Below, piece by piece: positions 36,846 through 46,000 of a DNA stretch of 64,000 nt. How positions within the stretch are numbered: position 1 is the stretch's first letter; each line of letters begins with the position of its first letter. Source of the stretch: Tubulanus polymorphus (Eukaryota > Animalia > Nemertea). Both the position numbers and the translations under genes were made by a program. The stretch is from NCBI RefSeq assembly GCF_964204645.1, contig NC_134033.1, positions 12,718,655 through 12,782,654 on the forward strand, given 5' to 3'. The notes beneath the pieces were generated by a model. It made no database searches. It was not told the origin of the DNA and saw nothing but the letters and a program-made list of their open reading frames with translations.

Positions 36846-37599
36846 CTGAAATGAAAGATATGTCAGTGGTAAGTTGTAATGGCACCTCTGAGGAAAGTTT
36901 GTTATTTTGTAGGATTTTACATTTTTTGAATAAATAAATTCTGGATTTTAAAATTCTTTTATTTTTAGTGGGTTTTTTATCGTATTGAGATTTGAGACTG
37001 AGACTATTATGCAATGCAAATTGCAATGCTGAAATTATTGTAAACATTTTTTGGGGATGACATTACCTTCAAGGAACCAAGGAGCAAATACGAATTTTTA
37101 ATACGAATCTCAGAATAAAACGAAACAGGTTAAACTGCAGCTATGCAGCATGTCCCGTGAGAGGACCTGGGGCCTGTGACGGGACAAGGATGTCCCGTCA
37201 CAGGCCGCGATGGAAAATGAAAACTTTGCATTTCGTAGACGAAATGTCGAAAGAAACTGCACTCGATTGGTTACTATATACACTCAAAATAATGTTAAGA
37301 ACATGTTAATAATCGAAATTTGTTCGTAATTTTATTATTTCAGATCAATGATATCATCAAATCGAAACATTAAATGTAATAATGAAGATCGGATCAAGAG
37401 AAGACAGAACCACAGCTATCGAAATTTCAATTTTTAGTGTATAGACTGACTCATACTATCGAAAATAAAGTGAATGTATCTTGACAATTTTGGTGCCAAT
37501 GGTGTTAGTAACCGTTTGTTAAGCGTTACACTGCAAACAAAAGTAAAAGTGGAGGGGGCAACTTAATGGCCCTAGATCACTCTCGAGAGAGAATTCAAA

Positions 37600-38772
37600 G
37601 TGAGGGACCCGATTCAACACACTGTCCCGTGAGAAGACCCGATTCAACTTACTGTCCCGTGAGAGGACCCGATTTCAAATACTGTCCCGTGAGAGGACCC
37701 GATTCAACACACTGTCCCGTGAGAGGGCCCGATTTTAAATACTTTCCCGTGGGAGGACTCGATTCAACACACTGTCCCGTGAGAGGACCTGATTCAACAC
37801 ACTGTCCCGTGAGAGGACCCGATTTCAAATAATGTCCCGTGAGAGGGCCCGATTCAACACACTGTCCCGTGAGAGGACCCGATTTTAAATACTGTCCCGT
37901 GAGAGGACCCGGTTCAACACACTGTTCCGTGAGAGGGCCCGATTTTAAATACTGTCCCGTGAGAGGATCCGATTTTGAATACTGTCCCGTGATAGGGCCC
38001 GGTTTCAAATAATGTCCCGTGAGAGGGCCCGATTCAACTCACTGTCCCGTGAGAGGGCCCGATTTTAAATACTGTCCCGTGAGAGGACCCGATTTTGAAT
38101 ACTGTCCCGTGAGAGGGCCCGGTTTCAAATAATGTCCCGTGAGAGGGCCCGATTCAACACACTGTCCCGTGAGAGGACCCGATTTTAAATACTGTCCCGT
38201 GAGAGGACCCGGTTCAACACACTGTTCCGTGAGAAGACCCGATTCAACACACTGTCCCGTGAGAGGACCCGATTTTAAATACTGTCCCGTGAGAGGACCC
38301 GATTTTAAATACTGTCCCGTGAGAGGACCCGGTTCAACACACTGTCCCGTGAGAAGACCCGATTCAACACACTGTCCCGTGAGAGGACCCGATTTTAAAT
38401 ACTGTCCCGTGAGAGGACCCGGTTCAACACACTGTCCCGTGAGAAGACCCGATTCAACACACTGTCCCGTGAGAGGACCCGATTTTAAATACTGTCCCGT
38501 GAGAAGACCCGATTCAACACACTGTCCCGTGAGAGGACCCGATTTTAAATACTGTCCCGTGAGAGGACCCGATTTTAAATACTGTCCCGTGAGAAGACCC
38601 GATTCAACACACTGTCCCGTGAGAGGACCCGATTTTAAATACTGTCCCGTGAGAAGACCCGGTTCAACACACTGTCCCGTGAGAGGACCCGATTTTAAAT
38701 ACTGTCCCGTGAGAAGACCCGGTTCAACACACTGTCCCGTGAGAGGACCCGATTTTAAATACTGTCCCGTGA
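37600..38772 (+). repeat. 30-bp minisatellite, about 39 units (left arm)
   Basis: Unit actgtcccgtgagaggacccgatt(caacac/ttaaat). Confidence 0.97.
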
Positions 38773-38848
38773 GCCAAAAGTTGTTGAATGAGTATCTTTA
38801 TGACGAATAGTGAATATTGGTGGAATATTTCTCTATTTTGATTTGTAG

Positions 38849-41318
38849 GTGTCCGGCGAACGACAGGACCAAGACGACGACGTGGACAATGATATTTCAA
38901 ACGTGAGTCAAAAGTTGTTGAATAAATATCTTTATGACAAATAGTGAATATTGTTGGAATATTTCTCTATTTTGATTTATAGGTGTCCGGCGAACGACAG
39001 GACCAAGACGACGACGTGGACGATGATATTTCAAACGTGGGCCAAAAGTTGTTGCATGAAAACTTCAATGTACAATATGAAAAAATGATCAAATATTGAA
39101 AAAAAATATATTTTACTGTATGAAATTACAGGTTTCCGCAGAAGACGGCTGGCTTAGATTGTATGACGACGTCTTTGATATACAAAATCTCACCGAGGCA
39201 GAACAGATTAAAATCAGTATGAAGTTATCACTCAAAGAGTCACATCTCCGTCAGAGTGCAGAGAAAAGGCTTCAATCTCTAGTTTCCGAATCCAATCTGA
39301 ATATTGTGTCGGTCGCGGATGACGGAAGCTGCTTTTTTTGCAGCTGTTGTCGAACAATTGAGGCGAGAAAACGTTGACATAACAGCACATGAGCTACGAT
39401 TAATGGCTGTTTCATACCTTTCTGAAAATAGACATTGCGCTGTAAGTAAATTAAAAACCCATTGATATATCAAGACAGACTACAATAAATATTATATACA
39501 CATATTATGGTTTGCTTCGCTGGATGGGGCTGATAAGGCCGACTTTCTGGAGTCTCATCTGACATGGCCATTATATCTTAATAAAATGAGACAAAGAACC
39601 ACCTGGGCCGATGCTTTAGTTGTCCGTGCCACAGCTGACTGTTAAGGGAGACCAATGGTACTATATACCAGTTCAGAGCAGTCAAACATCAATATGATAG
39701 ATCCTGTCGAATGTAAAAATGCTGAACCCATCTTACTAGGGCATATTCAAGATATTCACTACGTTGCCCTAGTAAAAAGGAGCTATATCCCAAGACGACG
39801 CGTGTCAGTCGAGAGTGTCAGAGGGTAACCTTGCGGCCTAACCCACGGAAGACGGTAAGTTGATAGTATATGCCACCCCTTCTGACTATTTGGCAAAAAT
39901 AATACAGCCATCAGAAGCCTTGTTCATGTCAGCTAAGGGTTAATTAATTGAATTAGCGTCAAAGCGTCAAAGTGACAGTTACCTCTGAGAACCGCAGAAA
40001 AAAAGAAGACGGGTTGTCGATAAAGGAATCTACTGCGTTTGCAAGAAACCAGATGATGGAAGGTAAAGCTTAATTATATCATATAAGATCAGGCTGTTGT
40101 TTTAAGATTCAGTCGTCATTGTCGAAAAAATCTTTTACCTTCACTTTCACTTTCACTTACCTTCACTTTCAAAATTTTCTGCATTTGCATTTTAGGAAGT
40201 ATTTGCAATGCGATGAATGTAGTGGGTGGTTCCATCCGAAATGTATTGGTCTGAACGAAGATACTGTGGAGAAAATTGACTATAGATGCGAAACGTGTTT
40301 TCAGGTAAGCGATGAACTAAAAAAATATTTTGATCGAATAAGCTATGCCTATATCCTTGCTATGCTATCCTTTTATACAATGTGATTGCATTCTTTTTAT
40401 ATAGGTACCTAAACGATTCATTAAGAGTCAGGTATGGAATCCGATACATAATGCATACGAAACTGTTGCCATCTTCCACTAAAAAGCAATGAATCAAATG
40501 TTTTTCTTTTCGCAGCTTGGCGCGGTTGAATATCACGTTTCTCGTATAATTAATGCCGAGATAAAAGACAAGAGGTAAATATTGTACCTTAGTAGAAATC
40601 TCGCCAGTTTGTTGAATTTTTCAAACTTTTGTTGATAATATACAATCTTTGGTTTCAGAAGGCCGGAATTCAGGAGACATTTGGACTTGATTAACAAAGA
40701 CCATGAAAGAGCCGAAAAAGAACTGAAAGGATATGGCTATGGGCTTTTAACTGATGAGGTAAGCATTGATAACAGAAAATATGAAATGCGTACAAATAAA
40801 TGAGCTTTCTTTCGATCATCGTAATATTCAATATTTTAAAGGGCCATGCATATCTCTATAGTGTAATGAAATCATACGTCAGCCCTACCTTTGCGGACAA
40901 ATCGTAAGTATATACATGAATCAGACGTGAAGTTTTTTTACTATATTTCGAAATGATAATCAATTCATTTCAATTACAGGAAACCATATTCAACTCGCTA
41001 CATGACCCTCCGACAACATCATTCTAAAATGCTGAATTCAGTTTTTAAAGAAGGAAAGACGTAAGTTCATTCTCATCTTCTATTGCTAATTTCTTAAAAG
41101 AATTTCATCCATGTTATATTCATTGTATTAAAATATTTTTCAGGTCAGCAGTAACGTATGTTAATGACGTTTTGCTTAAAGAGGCCATTTGTTTATTGGT
41201 GTCAACCTACCGAAATATCACATACAACGAGGCTGATATTCTTGGAAGAAGAACAGAGGCCAAAAAACTAAAAGATGTACAACGACTAATGTCCAAATAC
41301 TTCTTGCCAGATTATTGA
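38849..41318 (+). pseudogene. Spliced cargo gene: UIM-like + OTU deubiquitinase (disabled) + NLS + PHD finger + PWWP3A/MUM1-C-like domain
   Basis: Exons 38849-38902, 38983-39036, 39132-39441, 39520-39854, 39998-40062, 40196-40304, 40405-40431, 40516-40574, 40659-40758, 40842-40903, 40980-41060, 41144-41318. OTU motifs DDGSCFF, TWAD and LGHIQDIHY. PHD YCVCKKPDDGRKYLQCDECSGWFHPKCIG...YRCETC. Frameshifts and a stop occur in the OTU exons. Confidence 0.85.
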
Positions 41319-42245
41319 AGAGTGAAGCAGTTTTCGATTCTTAAATGGGAGCTGTTGTAGATTGGTTATCCCGTAATGATTGTATTCTATGGAATAAGTT
41401 TTCTTGTTGCGATGAATTTTTGGATTGCTAGAGATGGTCTTTGCTGAATTTTGGTAATGGTTTTAATAGGAACCAGATTGTGACATGGATGTTTGAATTG
41501 TTGAAATGCTGTCCAGTCTTCTAATAGATGTGTGTAGTATATAGCCTATAGAAGTTCTTTGCAATGATGTTTCAGAAGTTATGAATGATGGTTGAAAGAT
41601 TCCAGCCGGGGCCGAGATGGTATTGTAAATTGTTGTTAATTAGTGGATCGTTTTATCTGCCTGGTTTGTTGTCGATGTCTTATGCTGTGTACTACTTCGT
41701 GTTAAATATTATTTTTGTATTGTGTCTTAACAGACAAGGGCGTTTTCTGTCATCCAATATGAAATGATAATTTTTGGTTCAAATTATAATACATCTATCC
41801 GGAATTGGGAAATATTGCTGAAGAGTAAAAGGGGAAATATGAAAGAATTGATGATAACCTTTTTTACCGTGTAAAGTAATAATTAATAATCAAATGATAA
41901 GTAATAATTTAGTTTGGCGACAAAGATTTAGTAATCTAAAATGCTAAATTGATTTCGAATTCCAACGTATGTTGTTTATGTTCAAATATGAATAATATAG
42001 TCTTCGAATGTAATATGGTTTACAGATTTTGATAAATAAATAACTGAACATAATTTCACATATATACGATTTGTTTTATGTTTTAAGGGGACATAGCCAA
42101 TTTGGCTTTTAGTACGTACATCCAGCCATCATTGTACGCATATTGTTGAAATAATAATTTCTTGTTGTAATTTTTATATATGGCAAAAATGCATTATCAT
42201 TATGAGCATGGGACTCAACATTGACAAAGTGGACAATTTCATTAG

Positions 42246-43950
42246 TCCTCTCACGGGACAGTGTGTTGAACCGAGTCCTCTCACGTGACATTCTTTGAAA
42301 CCAGGTCCTCTCACGGAACAGTAAGTTGATTCGGGTCCTCTCACGGGACAGTGTGTTGAATCGGGTCCTCTCACGGGACAGTATGTTGAATCGGGTCCTC
42401 TCACGGGACATTATTTAAAAGCGGGCCCTCTCACGGGACAGTGTGTTGAATCGGGTCCTCTCACGGGACAGAGTGTTGAATCGGGCCCTCTCACGTGACA
42501 TTATTTGAAACCAGGTCCTCTCACGGAACAGTAAGTTGATTCGGGTCCTCTCACGGGACAGTGTGTTGAATCGGGTCCTCTCACGGGACAGTATGTTGAA
42601 TCGGGTCCTCTCACGGGACATTATTTAAAAGCGGGCCCTCTCACGGGACAGTGTGTTGAATCGGGTCCTCTCACGGGACAGAGTGTTGAATCGGGCCCTC
42701 TCACGTGACATTATTTGAAACCAGGTCCTCTCACGGGACAGTATGTTGAACCGAGTCCTCTCACGTGACATTCTTTGAAACCAGGTCCTCTCACGGGACA
42801 GTAAGTTGATTCGGGTCCTCTCACGGGACAGTGTGTTGAATCGGGTCCTCTCACGGGACAGTATTTAAAATAGGGTCCTCTAACGGGACAGTATTTAAAA
42901 TCGGGTCCTCTCACGGGACAGTGTGTTGAACCGGGTCCTCTCACGTGACATTATTTGAAACCAGGTCCTCTCACGGAACAGTAAGTTGATCCGGGTCCTC
43001 TCACGGGACATTATTTGAAACCAGGTCCTCTCACGGGACAGTGTGTTGAATCGGGTCCTCTCACGGGACAGTATTTAAAATCGGGTTCCTTCGCGGGACA
43101 GTATTTAAAATAGGGTCCTCTCGCGGGACAGTGTGTTGAATCGGGTCCTCTCACGGGACAGTATTTAAAATCGGGTTCCTTCGCGGGACAGTATTTAAAA
43201 TAGGGTCCTTTCACGGGACAGTGTGTTGAACCGGGTCCTCTAACGGGACAGTATTCAAAATCGGGTCCTCTCACGGGACAGTGTGTTGAATCGGGTCCTC
43301 TCACGGGACAGTATTTAAAATACGGTCCTCTAACGAGACAGTATTCAAAATCGGGTCCTCTCACGGGACAGTGTGTTGAATCGGGCCCTCTCACGTGACA
43401 TTATTTGAAACCAGGTCCTCTCACGGGACAGTAAGTTGATTCGGGTCCTCTCACGGGACAGTGTGTTGAATCGGGTCCTCTCACGGGACAGTATTTAAAA
43501 TCGGGTTCCTTCGCGGGACAGTATTTAAAATAGGGCCCTCTCACGGGACAGTGTGTTGAATCGGGTCCTCTCACGGGACAGTATTTAAAATCGGGTTCCT
43601 TCGCGGGACAGTATTTAAAATCGGGTCCTCTCACGGGACAGTGTGTTGAATCGGGTCCTCTCACGGACAGTATTTAAAATCGGGTTCCTTCGCGGGACAG
43701 TATTTAAAATAGGGTCCTCTCACGGGACAGTGTGTTGAATCGGGTCCTCTCACGGGACAGTATTTAAAATCGGGTTCCTTCGCGGGACAGTATTTAAAAT
43801 AGGGTCGTCTAACGGGACAGTATTCAAAATCGGGTCCTCTCACGGAACAGTGTGTTTAATCGGGTCCTCTCACGGGACAGTATTTAAAATCGGGTCCTCT
43901 CACGGGACATTGTGTTGAATCGGGACCTCTCACGGGACGGTAACTTGAAT
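42246..43950 (-). repeat. 30-bp minisatellite, about 57 units (right arm, inverted relative to the left arm)
   Basis: Unit tcgggtcctctcacgggacagt(gtgttgaa/atttaaaa), the reverse complement of the left-arm unit. Confidence 0.97.
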
Positions 43951-45377
43951 CGCGGGTTCCGTTGTAAAATCCTGCGTGAAAAACGTGCATTCATATCCCC
44001 TATTGTCCCCCTGGCCCTGCAGTAAATTAGAATTTTTCGGTAGGCCCTTATGTATTTATAAATGAAATCAAAATGGAAAATGTAATAATTACAATCGATA
44101 GTTGAATTTATTTATTCATAATCGTTATAGGCAGAATACATAAGAATATATAAGGGACTCGAAACCGCTAGCATTGGAATCGACGTTTCATGTAAGAATT
44201 CTACATTTGTCCCGTGAGAGGACCCATGTCCCGTCACAGGCCCGGGTCCTCTCACGGGACGCTGCAGTTAAACTCATATGAATAAAACGCTTTCGACCCG
44301 GAAATAACTTAGCATTGCGTAACACCGACAAATCGTCATATGGCGTCACAAGCCCCGAGGCTTGTCATGCCATATTGGGGCCTGACACGCCATGTAGTAA
44401 ACATAAAATAAAAATCAAATCCTATGCAGGAGATGAAACGTCGACTACGTCTCGCGGCTTTACTTCCGAAGTTGAAATATTGGATATTTATTTGTCATAG
44501 ATTATTTACAACGTACTATATATACATAATAAGACCTAGATATTGCATCGCATATATGAAAATTATTTGATGCCGTGATGAATTAAAAAATTAGACCAAA
44601 TCAAATTTGATTATGACAAGATAAAAACGATTTTACTTAAAATCAAATTTGATTTGACGTGATAAATTCGCCTTCCTCCAGCGATGGGAAACTTCGTGTG
44701 CTCCGGCGGCGTCGAGGGTTAAAAAGTCTGGACTCCGGCGTTCAAGGTTTATTTAATTCTGTGTTTATTATTTGAGGACTGTAACCTTTTAAATCGAACT
44801 CAGTTTCTTCATGCTTTTGTCATTTCAGCAGGTTAGGACCCAGACGAACGATCGACTGACGCTCGAAGAGTACGAGCTGTACCTTAAAAACTGACCGGAG
44901 CCGACTGACTGGAGCCGACCGCAACAGACTGAAAAAAACCAGGCGGCGCTAAATTCGAGGGTCGGGAATCGAGTAATTTATTTTATATGGCCTTGTTCTA
45001 CGGTAGGTTCGGCTGGCTACTGGCGCGTATTCAAAGTAAATCCATTCAACAATAGAGACACAATAGCGGTTTTTCAGAGTTGTTGATAACGCTCACATGC
45101 CCTATTGAATACGTCACCGGCTAACCACGGTGTAGTACAAGCATAGACCATTCACCTCTGCACACTCACACTGTGAACATGCTACCGTGGATTCTCCTCC
45201 TGGCGATTTTCGCTGCGCTCCCGCTCCTGTTCCTGCTTCCTGAGGAACGACGTCTTTATGTTTTATGTGTTACTGTTCGTCTCCGTGCTGTCCTGTACTG
45301 TTTCGTGTTCATTAATCCGTTCTATTTTTCAGGATTTAACCCGTTTTATTTTTCAGGGTCGAATTTCAACATTTGCT

Positions 45378-46000
45378 GGAACAAAACTAATGTCCGAAAG
45401 CGTCGGCTCTCCTTCGCCGGTCATGTGTCGAGGATGTCAGACAAAGAGTCGGTCAGGAAATGGCTGCCCTCTACACGCCCTCATACGGAACACGAAAACC
45501 AGGATGACGAGGCCTCACTCTCCCCACATATCAACAGAGTGTGCTTGGTGATGTCAATGACAGGCAAGTCAGTCGGATTGCACGGGTTAAAAGTGGAGTG
45601 GTAAAGCTGGACTGTCTACTAGTATTCATTGATTCCTTTTAAGGGATTGCTTCGGGCAGGGATTAATTTCCCTGTCTTCCTTTGAGTGTTAGTATTCATT
45701 GATTCTGCGTGGGTCGCTTCGGGCAGGCTAAGTCTTGTCTTCCTTTGAGTGCTAGTGCGGGCAATCCAGTTGCGCTACCCTATTTTTGGCTTGGGCAATT
45801 TGATAGGTTTGTCAGTTACTGACATCACCTAGCACACCCTGTTGGTAAATGGTGAAAGTAAGGCATCGTCATCCTGATTTTCGCGTTCTGTGTGAGGGCG
45901 TGTAGAGGGCAGTATATTCCTGGCTGGCTCTTTGTCTGGTGTTCTGGGCATGTGACCAGCGACGGAGAGCTGAAAAGCTTTCGGACATTAGTTTTGTTCC
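45378..46000. repeat. Inverted pair of ~140-bp LINE-derived fragments
   Basis: 45378-45515 (RKRRLSFAGHVSRM, RTE-like ORF2 C-terminus) and its reverse complement at about 45860-46000. Confidence 0.7.

Follow-up and report, generated by a model that had tools for sequence, protein, structure and literature searches.

An apparently young, non-autonomous foldback-like transposon family with arrays of its terminal motif and a relic gene in the nemertean Tubulanus polymorphus

The genome of the nemertean Tubulanus polymorphus harbours a 7,159-bp mobile element on contig NC_134033.1 (RefSeq assembly GCF_964204645.1), located at positions 37122-44280 of a 64,000-nucleotide stretch termed the window (contig positions 12,718,655 to 12,782,654, forward strand). 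The element extends from GAAACAGG... to ...CTCATATG and comprises two inverted ends that fold into hairpins, two opposed arrays of a 30-bp unit further inside and a multi-exon gene between the arrays. With a probability of roughly 0.78, we assign it to a young, non-autonomous family of cut-and-paste DNA transposons, of which it is one copy. An earlier note, made from the sequence of the window alone, had proposed an unassigned DNA transposon of foldback-like layout that lacks a transposase. This general picture is borne out, and the element proves to be multi-copy and recently active. The ends, the target-site duplication (TSD) and the role of the gene, as given in that note, have to be revised.

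The boundaries are derived from the other members of the family. The genome-wide search of the ends that had been suggested to fix the TSD length yielded approximately 15 near-identical left ends and 16 right ends. The family numbers 15 complete copies and about 53 termini. All 15 complete copies are flanked by an 8-bp TSD (13 perfect, two matching at 7 of 8 positions), and the 8-mer is a different one at every locus. Since the 8 nt just outside the tips recur on the other side and differ from locus to locus, the element in the window ends at 37122 and 44280. Its own TSD is AATAAAAC, present at 37114-37121 and, identically, at 44281-44288 (no strand assigned), while each of the other 14 copies has another 8-mer. 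The target profile reads V-A-W-W-W-W-W-N, with an AT-rich middle, mostly A at position 2 and A or T at position 7. The left ends all begin with GAAACAGGTTAAACTGCAGC, and the right ends all finish with GCTGCAGTT[A/T]AACTCATATG. Thus, the family has defined ends with inverted repeats and a TSD of fixed length that varies by insertion, as expected of Class II cut-and-paste elements with terminal inverted repeats (TIRs).

The ends had previously been placed at 37135 and 44267, with TAA, TTAAA or GTTAAAC as the TSD. In the window copy GTTAAAC indeed adjoins both inverted repeats, but it is internal and falls within the inverted repeat of all 15 complete copies. GTT[A/T]AAC and the 7 nt outside it are the same in all copies, these 7 nt being conserved in every one of the approximately 15 left and 16 right ends, and only the next 8 nt are locus-specific and duplicated. 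In several elements the right-hand string reads GTTTAAC, and therefore it is not even a direct repeat there. The conserved tips accordingly extend outward beyond the positions first given. A PIF/Harbinger- or piggyBac-like element (TAA/TTA or TTAA TSD), as implied by the shorter strings, finds no support, given the 8-bp TSD that differs at each copy; the TTAAA string is conserved element sequence.

The complete copies span 779 bp to 13.8 kb, and deletion derivatives are as short as 0.8 kb. Eight gene-bearing copies are 99.1-99.8% identical between the arrays, and the other seven consist of the arrays and a short spacer only. Two long copies were considered as autonomous candidates and dropped: the excess length of the 13.8-kb copy is due to a nested gag-type retroelement of 7.65 kb and not to a transposase, and the 9.6-kb copy has longer arrays only. 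The 7.65-kb insert, nested in an intron of the relic gene of a copy other than that in the window (loci L061 and L062) at approximately G000 C2:9,098,300-9,105,960, contains a 355-aa gag-like open reading frame (ORF) with a CCHC knuckle as well as a 678-aa acidic ORF and is probably a retroelement. At another locus (L058, G000 C4:15,075,135-15,075,218), an 84-nt remnant of a right end lies between two 43-nt copies of the flank that include the TSD, with a GAATT microhomology at the joint. This arrangement looks like the outcome of abortive gap repair following an excision. Together with the signature of staggered cuts 8 bp apart, the sharpness and conservation of the ends and the existence of internally deleted derivatives, this remnant demonstrates a DDE-type cut-and-paste mechanism.

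Further evidence on the age of the family comes from run X5, an Illumina DNA data set of another sample and study (1,934 million letters over 268 Mb). Depth over the inner region of the element is approximately 50-65 fold, compared to about 7.2 fold for the genome, which corresponds to about 7-9 copies. The window copy differs from the seven other gene-bearing copies by private alleles at eight sites in unique sequence (38888, 39040, 39433, 39955 with a 4-nt insert, 39962, 40336, 40465 and 40482). No X5 read carries the allele of the window copy at any of these sites, among 328 read observations that are summed over closely spaced sites and hence are not independent reads; about 41 would be expected if the copy were present. 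The window copy, as assembled, is therefore probably absent from the X5 animal. This absence is consistent with insertion polymorphism but falls short of proof, since for half of the reads in X5 the likeness is no more than 95-99%, and the population from which the animal stems may be a diverged one.

Three blocks are common to the two inverted ends, namely GTT[A/T]AACTGCAGC, GTCCCGTGAGAGGACC (the 16-nt motif) and GGCCTGTGACGGGAC. At either extremity 7 nt lie outside the inverted repeat, and these tips, GAAACAG and CATATGA, do not match each other; they are nevertheless kept even in copies of only 77-85% overall identity. On the left (plus strand), the tip GAAACAG occupies 37122-37128, is not complementary to the right tip and is conserved in approximately 24 left termini, including those of the 77-85% identical copies. 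It is followed by the outer inverted-repeat block GTTAAACTGCAGC (37129-37141), which contains the string formerly taken for the TSD. A degenerate 20-mer composed of tip plus block is found at 53 termini genome-wide, compared to a single match with the reversed control. Next come the left-only insert TATGCAGCAT (37142-37151), which pairs with the preceding CTGCA as a small 5-bp stem, the terminal copy (37152-37167) of the 16-nt motif, which the arrays contain in amplified form, and a hairpin formed by GGCCTGTGACGGGAC, the loop AAGGAT and GTCCCGTCACAGGCC (37171-37206; -30.3 kcal/mol for 37122-37215, z = -6.95). A non-repetitive subterminal region, which is 95-100% identical in 15 left ends, leads to the array (37207-37599).

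On the right (minus strand), the corresponding subterminal region (43953-44208) is also non-repetitive and is 95-100% identical in 16 right ends. The adjacent hairpin (44209-44260) is built from GTCCCGTGAGAGGACCC, an 18-nt loop and GGGTCCTCTCACGGGAC (-21.7 kcal/mol, z = -6.0), and the inverted-repeat block GCTGCAGTTAAAC together with the tip TCATATG completes the element (44261-44280). Folded as single-stranded DNA, each end forms a stem of 15-17 bp, and none of 200 shuffled sequences folds equally well. The two stems differ in composition: the left one consists of GGCCTGTGACGGGAC and its complement, the right one of the array motif and its complement. The matching inverted ends with hairpins and the additional 10 nt at the left end, both noted before, thus hold up. 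The 13-mer GTTWAACTGCAGC also recurs without transposon tips, seven times at C6:1.12-1.66 Mb and six times at C12:5.33-5.42 Mb, in each case on a single strand and at intervals of 10-160 kb; these recurrences probably lie inside an unrelated dispersed or tandemly duplicated unit.

The left array (37600-38773, plus strand) comprises approximately 39 units of 30 bp in 1,174 bp (Tandem Repeats Finder scores 1531 and 1631), and the right array (42245-43952, minus strand) comprises 57.0 units in inverted orientation, in agreement with the numbers and the opposed orientation reported earlier. The two arrays are about 86% complementary over 1.17 kb. Each left-array unit has a constant part of about 20 bp that contains the terminal motif, and about 10 bp that alternate between ATTCAACACA and ATTTTAAATA, with higher orders of 60 and 90 bp. 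The arrays lie approximately 480 and 330 bp inside the ends, from which they are separated by unique sequence, and relative to each end the array motif has the orientation of the terminal copy. The motif count is highly variable among the element copies, with 13-73 motifs in the left arm and 0-98 in the right one. Adjoining the left array is a tandem duplication of a 134-bp unit (38768-39054, plus strand, 2.1 copies), which contains an 18-codon acidic exon (38849-38902 and 38983-39036) and an intron, and the copy number of which also varies among element copies. The last unit of the left array runs into the donor-like GTGAG of the 134-bp unit.

The gene between the arrays lies on the plus strand. 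Its exons were searched singly, the sole joined sequence used being the public model P0001. The exon at 39132-39441 encodes a UIM-like helix and an OTU-like Cys box, DDGSCFF, and carries a +1 frameshift in a run of seven T (39333-39339) that is the same in all seven copies holding it; no indel is listed there in the X5 reads. The remaining OTU-like region with the His box IHYVAL (39484-39854) is interrupted by two in-frame stops, a TAA at 39643-39645 common to all copies and a TAA at 39826-39828 that reads TAC in one copy only. The next exon (39965-40062) contains an in-frame TGA (39986-39988), a basic KKRRR stretch and the first half of a PHD finger, the second half of which is encoded at 40196-40304. 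Six further exons (40405-40431, 40516-40574, 40659-40758, 40842-40903, 40980-41060 and 41144-41318) code for an all-helical orphan C-terminal domain and end with a stop codon at 41316-41318. The 3' untranslated region and spacer, with no notable ORF, follow (41319-42244).

Spliced contigs from run X4, which behaves as an RNA run, use the donor at 39854/39855 and precisely skip the predicted GT..AG introns at 39855-39964, 40063-40195, 40305-40404, 40432-40515, 40575-40658, 40759-40841, 40904-40979 and 41061-41143; one contig covers 41275-42138. Of the 12-exon gene proposed earlier, the eight 3' exons are hence backed by spliced contigs, while the additional T and the TAA, TAA and TGA codons listed above amount to four breaks in the frame of the 5' half. 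The first, second and fourth of these breaks are invariant among the copies that retain the region. The gene is a transcribed and spliced relic, the 5' half of which was disabled before the copies spread. It is accordingly carried as a passenger that the element does not require in cis to move.

The domains of the gene product are documented to a different extent. The PHD finger (40197-40304), a Cys4-His-Cys3 zinc-binding domain, matches Pfam PF00628 with E = 1.2e-8 and 35.3 bits (cut-off 24). The segment 39132-39338 weakly resembles the UIMs of PSMD4/S5a, the four best PDB matches having E = 0.024-0.47. The OTU-like region owes its designation to the DDGSCFF and IHYVAL motifs, which were recognised by eye. 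Separate searches with four pieces of the region found no match in Pfam or PDB, apart from PDB matches of one piece to LRP4/6 YWTD repeats that were judged spurious. An OTU deubiquitinase would thus have neither a significant profile match nor an open frame, given the +1 shift and the two TAA stops. A search of Rfam yielded no match. For the C-terminal domain no relative outside the species was found among 1.84 billion representatives, and the species' own model was the only match in these representatives, a 5.8-billion-sequence collection and the ESM Atlas; a second match to the query turned out to be a low-complexity artefact. A single-sequence structure model of this domain (about 170 aa) is all-helical, with a predicted local distance difference test (pLDDT) score of 45, which is too poor for a usable fold search. 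The public model LOC141915504 (P0001), a protein of 218 aa, begins within the acidic exons but out of frame, omits the exons for OTU and PHD and closes with the helical C-terminal domain, all six exons of which it contains.

The earlier note had seen in this gene a working chromatin/ubiquitin cargo that may counter silencing. The genuine PHD finger and the transcription and splicing of the gene speak for this idea, but the UIM/OTU-like part was already broken in the family (a frameshift and two stops in the OTU-like frame), and the PHD frame, which follows the TGA, has no usable start codon, the first in-frame ATG lying in exon 10 (40842-40903). Taken together with the boundary evidence, an element spanning 37135-44267 with a TAA, TTAAA or GTTAAAC duplication and a working anti-silencing gene is barely credible. 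Between 39989 and the stop codon, 228 codons are open over eight exons and are expressed, and one might ask whether the PHD and C-terminal protein, or the 218-aa model, is an unrecognised transposase or recruiting factor that renders the element autonomous. The occurrence of paralogues in other repeats and the lack of relatives of the C-terminal domain among the 1.84 billion representatives would be compatible with such a role. However, the domain is small and all-helical in its model, with no acidic catalytic core evident, the frame lacks a start codon, and the seven gene-less, array-only copies have equally clean TSDs. Autonomy of this kind is consequently very improbable, and we retain the view of a non-autonomous element with a passenger relic.

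Relatives of the gene are present elsewhere in the genome. An older relative on C8 (G000 C8:7,477,000-7,499,905) has exons that are 94-98% identical, its first and last searched exons, i.e., the OTU exon and the last exon, being 17.8 kb apart. Compact paralogues reside on C4 (6,892,245-6,894,241; 53-56% identity) and C11 (10,329,691-10,331,881; 43%), and five identical copies show 49% identity. The gene type thus recurs in repeats of the T. polymorphus genome and does not go back to a single isolated capture. The C8 relative is flanked on its right (L050:1778-2450; G000 C8:7,499,906 onward) by the decayed gene of a transposon, in which DFSENY and GHGKGAADGIGG motifs are present. Within 700 bp of this decayed gene there is another array of the 30-bp unit, which identifies the flank as a nest of elements.

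Several other repeats are associated with diverged ends of the family. Truncated right ends were considered as the ends of a second family and rejected, as their interiors are unrelated to one another. Just inside three diverged ends (L016:2191-3431, L051:2207-3284 and L023:528-905) lies a C2H2 zinc-finger gene with the N-terminal motifs ..SSYIKLPF..NVQNFDDKCFLW.., a region that we take to resemble the N-terminus of protein-primed polymerase B genes. Since the junctions differ, these are independent landings of another mobile element in the arrays. In the window itself, an ORF at 45173-45604 that ends with ..NVRKRRLSFAGHVSRMSDKESVRK recurs beside partial left-end fragments at two loci (L024 and L026); it belongs to another repeat family and is possibly the tail of a non-LTR element.

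As stated earlier, the element does not contain a transposase: it has no ORF of sufficient length. No copy has an ORF of more than 100 aa outside the arrays that could be a transposase, or room for one; the interiors of the short copies consist of arrays and a short spacer only, and no transposase was found at the diverged or orphan ends (L016-L060). The whole genome was also scanned with Pfam profiles, and linkage was judged by the position of the matches relative to the copies, the C8 relative and the gene paralogues.

An 8-bp TSD fits a non-autonomous hAT element, and hAT transposases are abundant in the genome (88 matches to PF05699, the C-terminal dimerisation domain, including some open frames of more than 700 aa). 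Moreover, subterminal repeats of short motifs are typical of hAT elements, and the array motif is comparable to the short subterminal transposase-binding repeats of Ac or hobo. The hAT consensus comprises the tip YARNG and the target nTnnnnAn; the tips GAAACAG and CATATGA do not fit the former, and the profile V-A-W-W-W-W-W-N does not fit the latter. Furthermore, no hAT match lies inside any copy or the C8 relative. Membership in the hAT superfamily is hence possible, and we advance it only tentatively.

P and Zisupton elements make 8-bp TSDs as well (7-8 bp in the case of P), and a P/Galileo-like or KDZ/Zisupton-like element would also accord with the existence of both transposase types in the genome, with 24 matches to the P-type RNaseH domain (PF21787) and 20 to KDZ/Zisupton (PF18758). 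None of the P-type matches is linked to the family, and no P or KDZ match is found within a copy, in the C8 relative or beside a gene paralogue. The long TIRs of Galileo are internally repetitive and contain THAP sites (PMC3688188), a feature that recalls the arrays described here. The only match of the 13-mer near a P-like gene, at C12:11199095 and 4.4 kb from that gene, was dropped, having neither a tip nor further similarity. Kinship with these groups is doubtful.

The Mutator/Rehavkus/Foldback group deserves consideration, since in Rehavkus a PHD finger occurs together with a minisatellite close to the TIR (PMC6446971), Foldback (FB) and Phantom have repetitive inverted arms, and MULE domains are abundant in the genome (75 matches to PF10551). 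However, all 15 copies have a TSD of 8 bp, compared to 9 bp in Rehavkus and FB, and this length sits at the edge of the Mutator range (8-11 bp). Besides, the PHD finger belongs to a separate relic gene rather than to a transposase, and no MULE domain is found in any copy or the C8 relative, which makes membership in this group doubtful. Merlin (PF12762, IS1595-type), a class with TSDs of 8-9 bp, gave 46 matches genome-wide, none of them linked to the family. It is unlikely that the mover is a transposase outside the described superfamilies, or of a very divergent lineage, and that intact UIM/OTU/PHD relatives of the gene constitute a transposon-borne chromatin/ubiquitin module; if true, such a module would point to a general anti-silencing accessory function.

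A number of points weigh against our interpretation of the element as a copy of a young non-autonomous cut-and-paste family. An autonomous partner with these termini, for which the earlier note had suggested a genome-wide search of the ends, was sought and not found among the approximately 53 termini, all tip-bearing loci being the gene-poor family itself. The hAT, P, MULE, KDZ and Merlin domain matches all lie outside every copy. The supposed binding of a protein to the GTCCCGTGAGAGGACC motif and the arrays leans on the precedent of Galileo, and the possible origin of the X5 animal from a diverged population weakens the argument for insertion polymorphism. Finally, the contrast between four breaks in the 5' half and 228 open codons on the 3' side may reflect some residual coding use of the PHD and C-terminal part. 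No defining transposase is tied to the family, and it shows neither the 9-bp TSD of Rehavkus and FB nor the hAT tip and target patterns. We therefore classify it as a non-autonomous TIR family of foldback-like layout that belongs to no assigned superfamily. It varies a kind of element already known and is not new in kind.

In the mechanism that we propose for this family, a transposase supplied in trans would recognise the conserved tips together with the GTTWAACTGCAGC block and GTCCCGTGAGAGGACC, the 16-nt motif. The single terminal motif of each end would have been multiplied into the two arrays, its orientation relative to each end being kept, and the arrays could lengthen and shorten by unequal exchange. 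As many extra putative binding sites, they might recruit the transposase and pair the ends of a long element. The hairpins may, speculatively, play a role in single-stranded intermediates or in end pairing. For Galileo, the THAP domain of the transposase binds sites within the tandem repeats of the long TIRs, and the authors suggest that these sites confer specificity and compensate for the cost that comes with a long element (PMC3688188).

Mobile elements of nemerteans have hardly been described, and the youth of the family, as judged from an identity of about 99.5% and a probable insertion polymorphism, makes it amenable to study as a live system. It provides an unusually clear case of a terminal recognition motif that appears to have been copied into kilobase arrays on both arms, and thus bears on two questions, namely what the repetitive arms of foldback-type transposons are for and in which way satellites are seeded by transposons. 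In practical terms, the repeat library of the T. polymorphus genome needs the corrected boundaries and the 8-bp TSD, and LOC141915504, annotated as a 218-aa protein-coding gene, should carry a flag as transposon-derived. The idea of an anti-silencing cargo is tempered by the finding that the gene is broken in the T. polymorphus family.

In architecture, the closest known systems are Galileo, Foldback/TU/Tetris/Tm1 and Rehavkus. With regard to the length of the TSD, the nearest are hAT, P, Zisupton, Merlin and some Mutator elements. Galileo, a member of the P superfamily in Drosophila with the relatives Kepler and Newton, likewise moves by cut-and-paste, and most of its copies are non-autonomous and structurally very variable. 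Its TSD is 7 bp long, and it encodes a THAP/P transposase, whereas the T. polymorphus family has no linked P-type gene and an 8-bp TSD. Both have long inverted arms with tandem repeats, which in Galileo carry extra transposase-binding sites (PMC3688188). Unlike in Galileo, the inverted repeat of the T. polymorphus family starts 7 nt inside non-matching tips, and the arrays are separated from the ends.

FB of Drosophila, TU of sea urchins, Tetris of D. virilis and Tm1 of Meloidogyne share inverted arms of short tandem repeats, the length of which is widely variable. For Tetris it is reported that such arrays can seed satellites (PMC4079207). FB and Tm1 are Mutator-related and produce 9-bp TSDs, and the FB repeats extend nearly to the tips; in T. 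polymorphus the TSD measures 8 bp, and the motif of the terminal hairpin is what the repeat unit copies. Rehavkus, a Mutator-related element of arthropods and annelids, resembles the family in combining a PHD finger with a minisatellite beside the TIR in a spiralian or arthropod host (PMC6446971). It differs by a 9-bp TSD, a single ORF with the PHD finger inside the transposase and a minisatellite before the 3' TIR only (PMC6446971), while the T. polymorphus family has no transposase, arrays on both arms and a TSD of 8 bp.

The hAT elements with subterminal repeats (Ac/Ds, hobo) have in common with the family an 8-bp TSD, reiterated subterminal motifs and plentiful internally deleted, non-autonomous copies; the tips and the target pattern do not fit, and the T. 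polymorphus arrays are larger by one to two orders of magnitude. Finally, with respect to the gene, Pack-MULEs, KI-MULEs with a ULP1 protease and the OTU genes of Helitrons/Helentrons provide parallels of DNA transposons that carry an intron-containing gene with a deubiquitinase-like protease fold. In contrast to these carriers, the protease-like part is inactivated in the T. polymorphus family. Since paralogues occur in other repeats of the same genome, the gene looks more like an accessory gene that was borne by transposons and has decayed than like a host gene captured recently.

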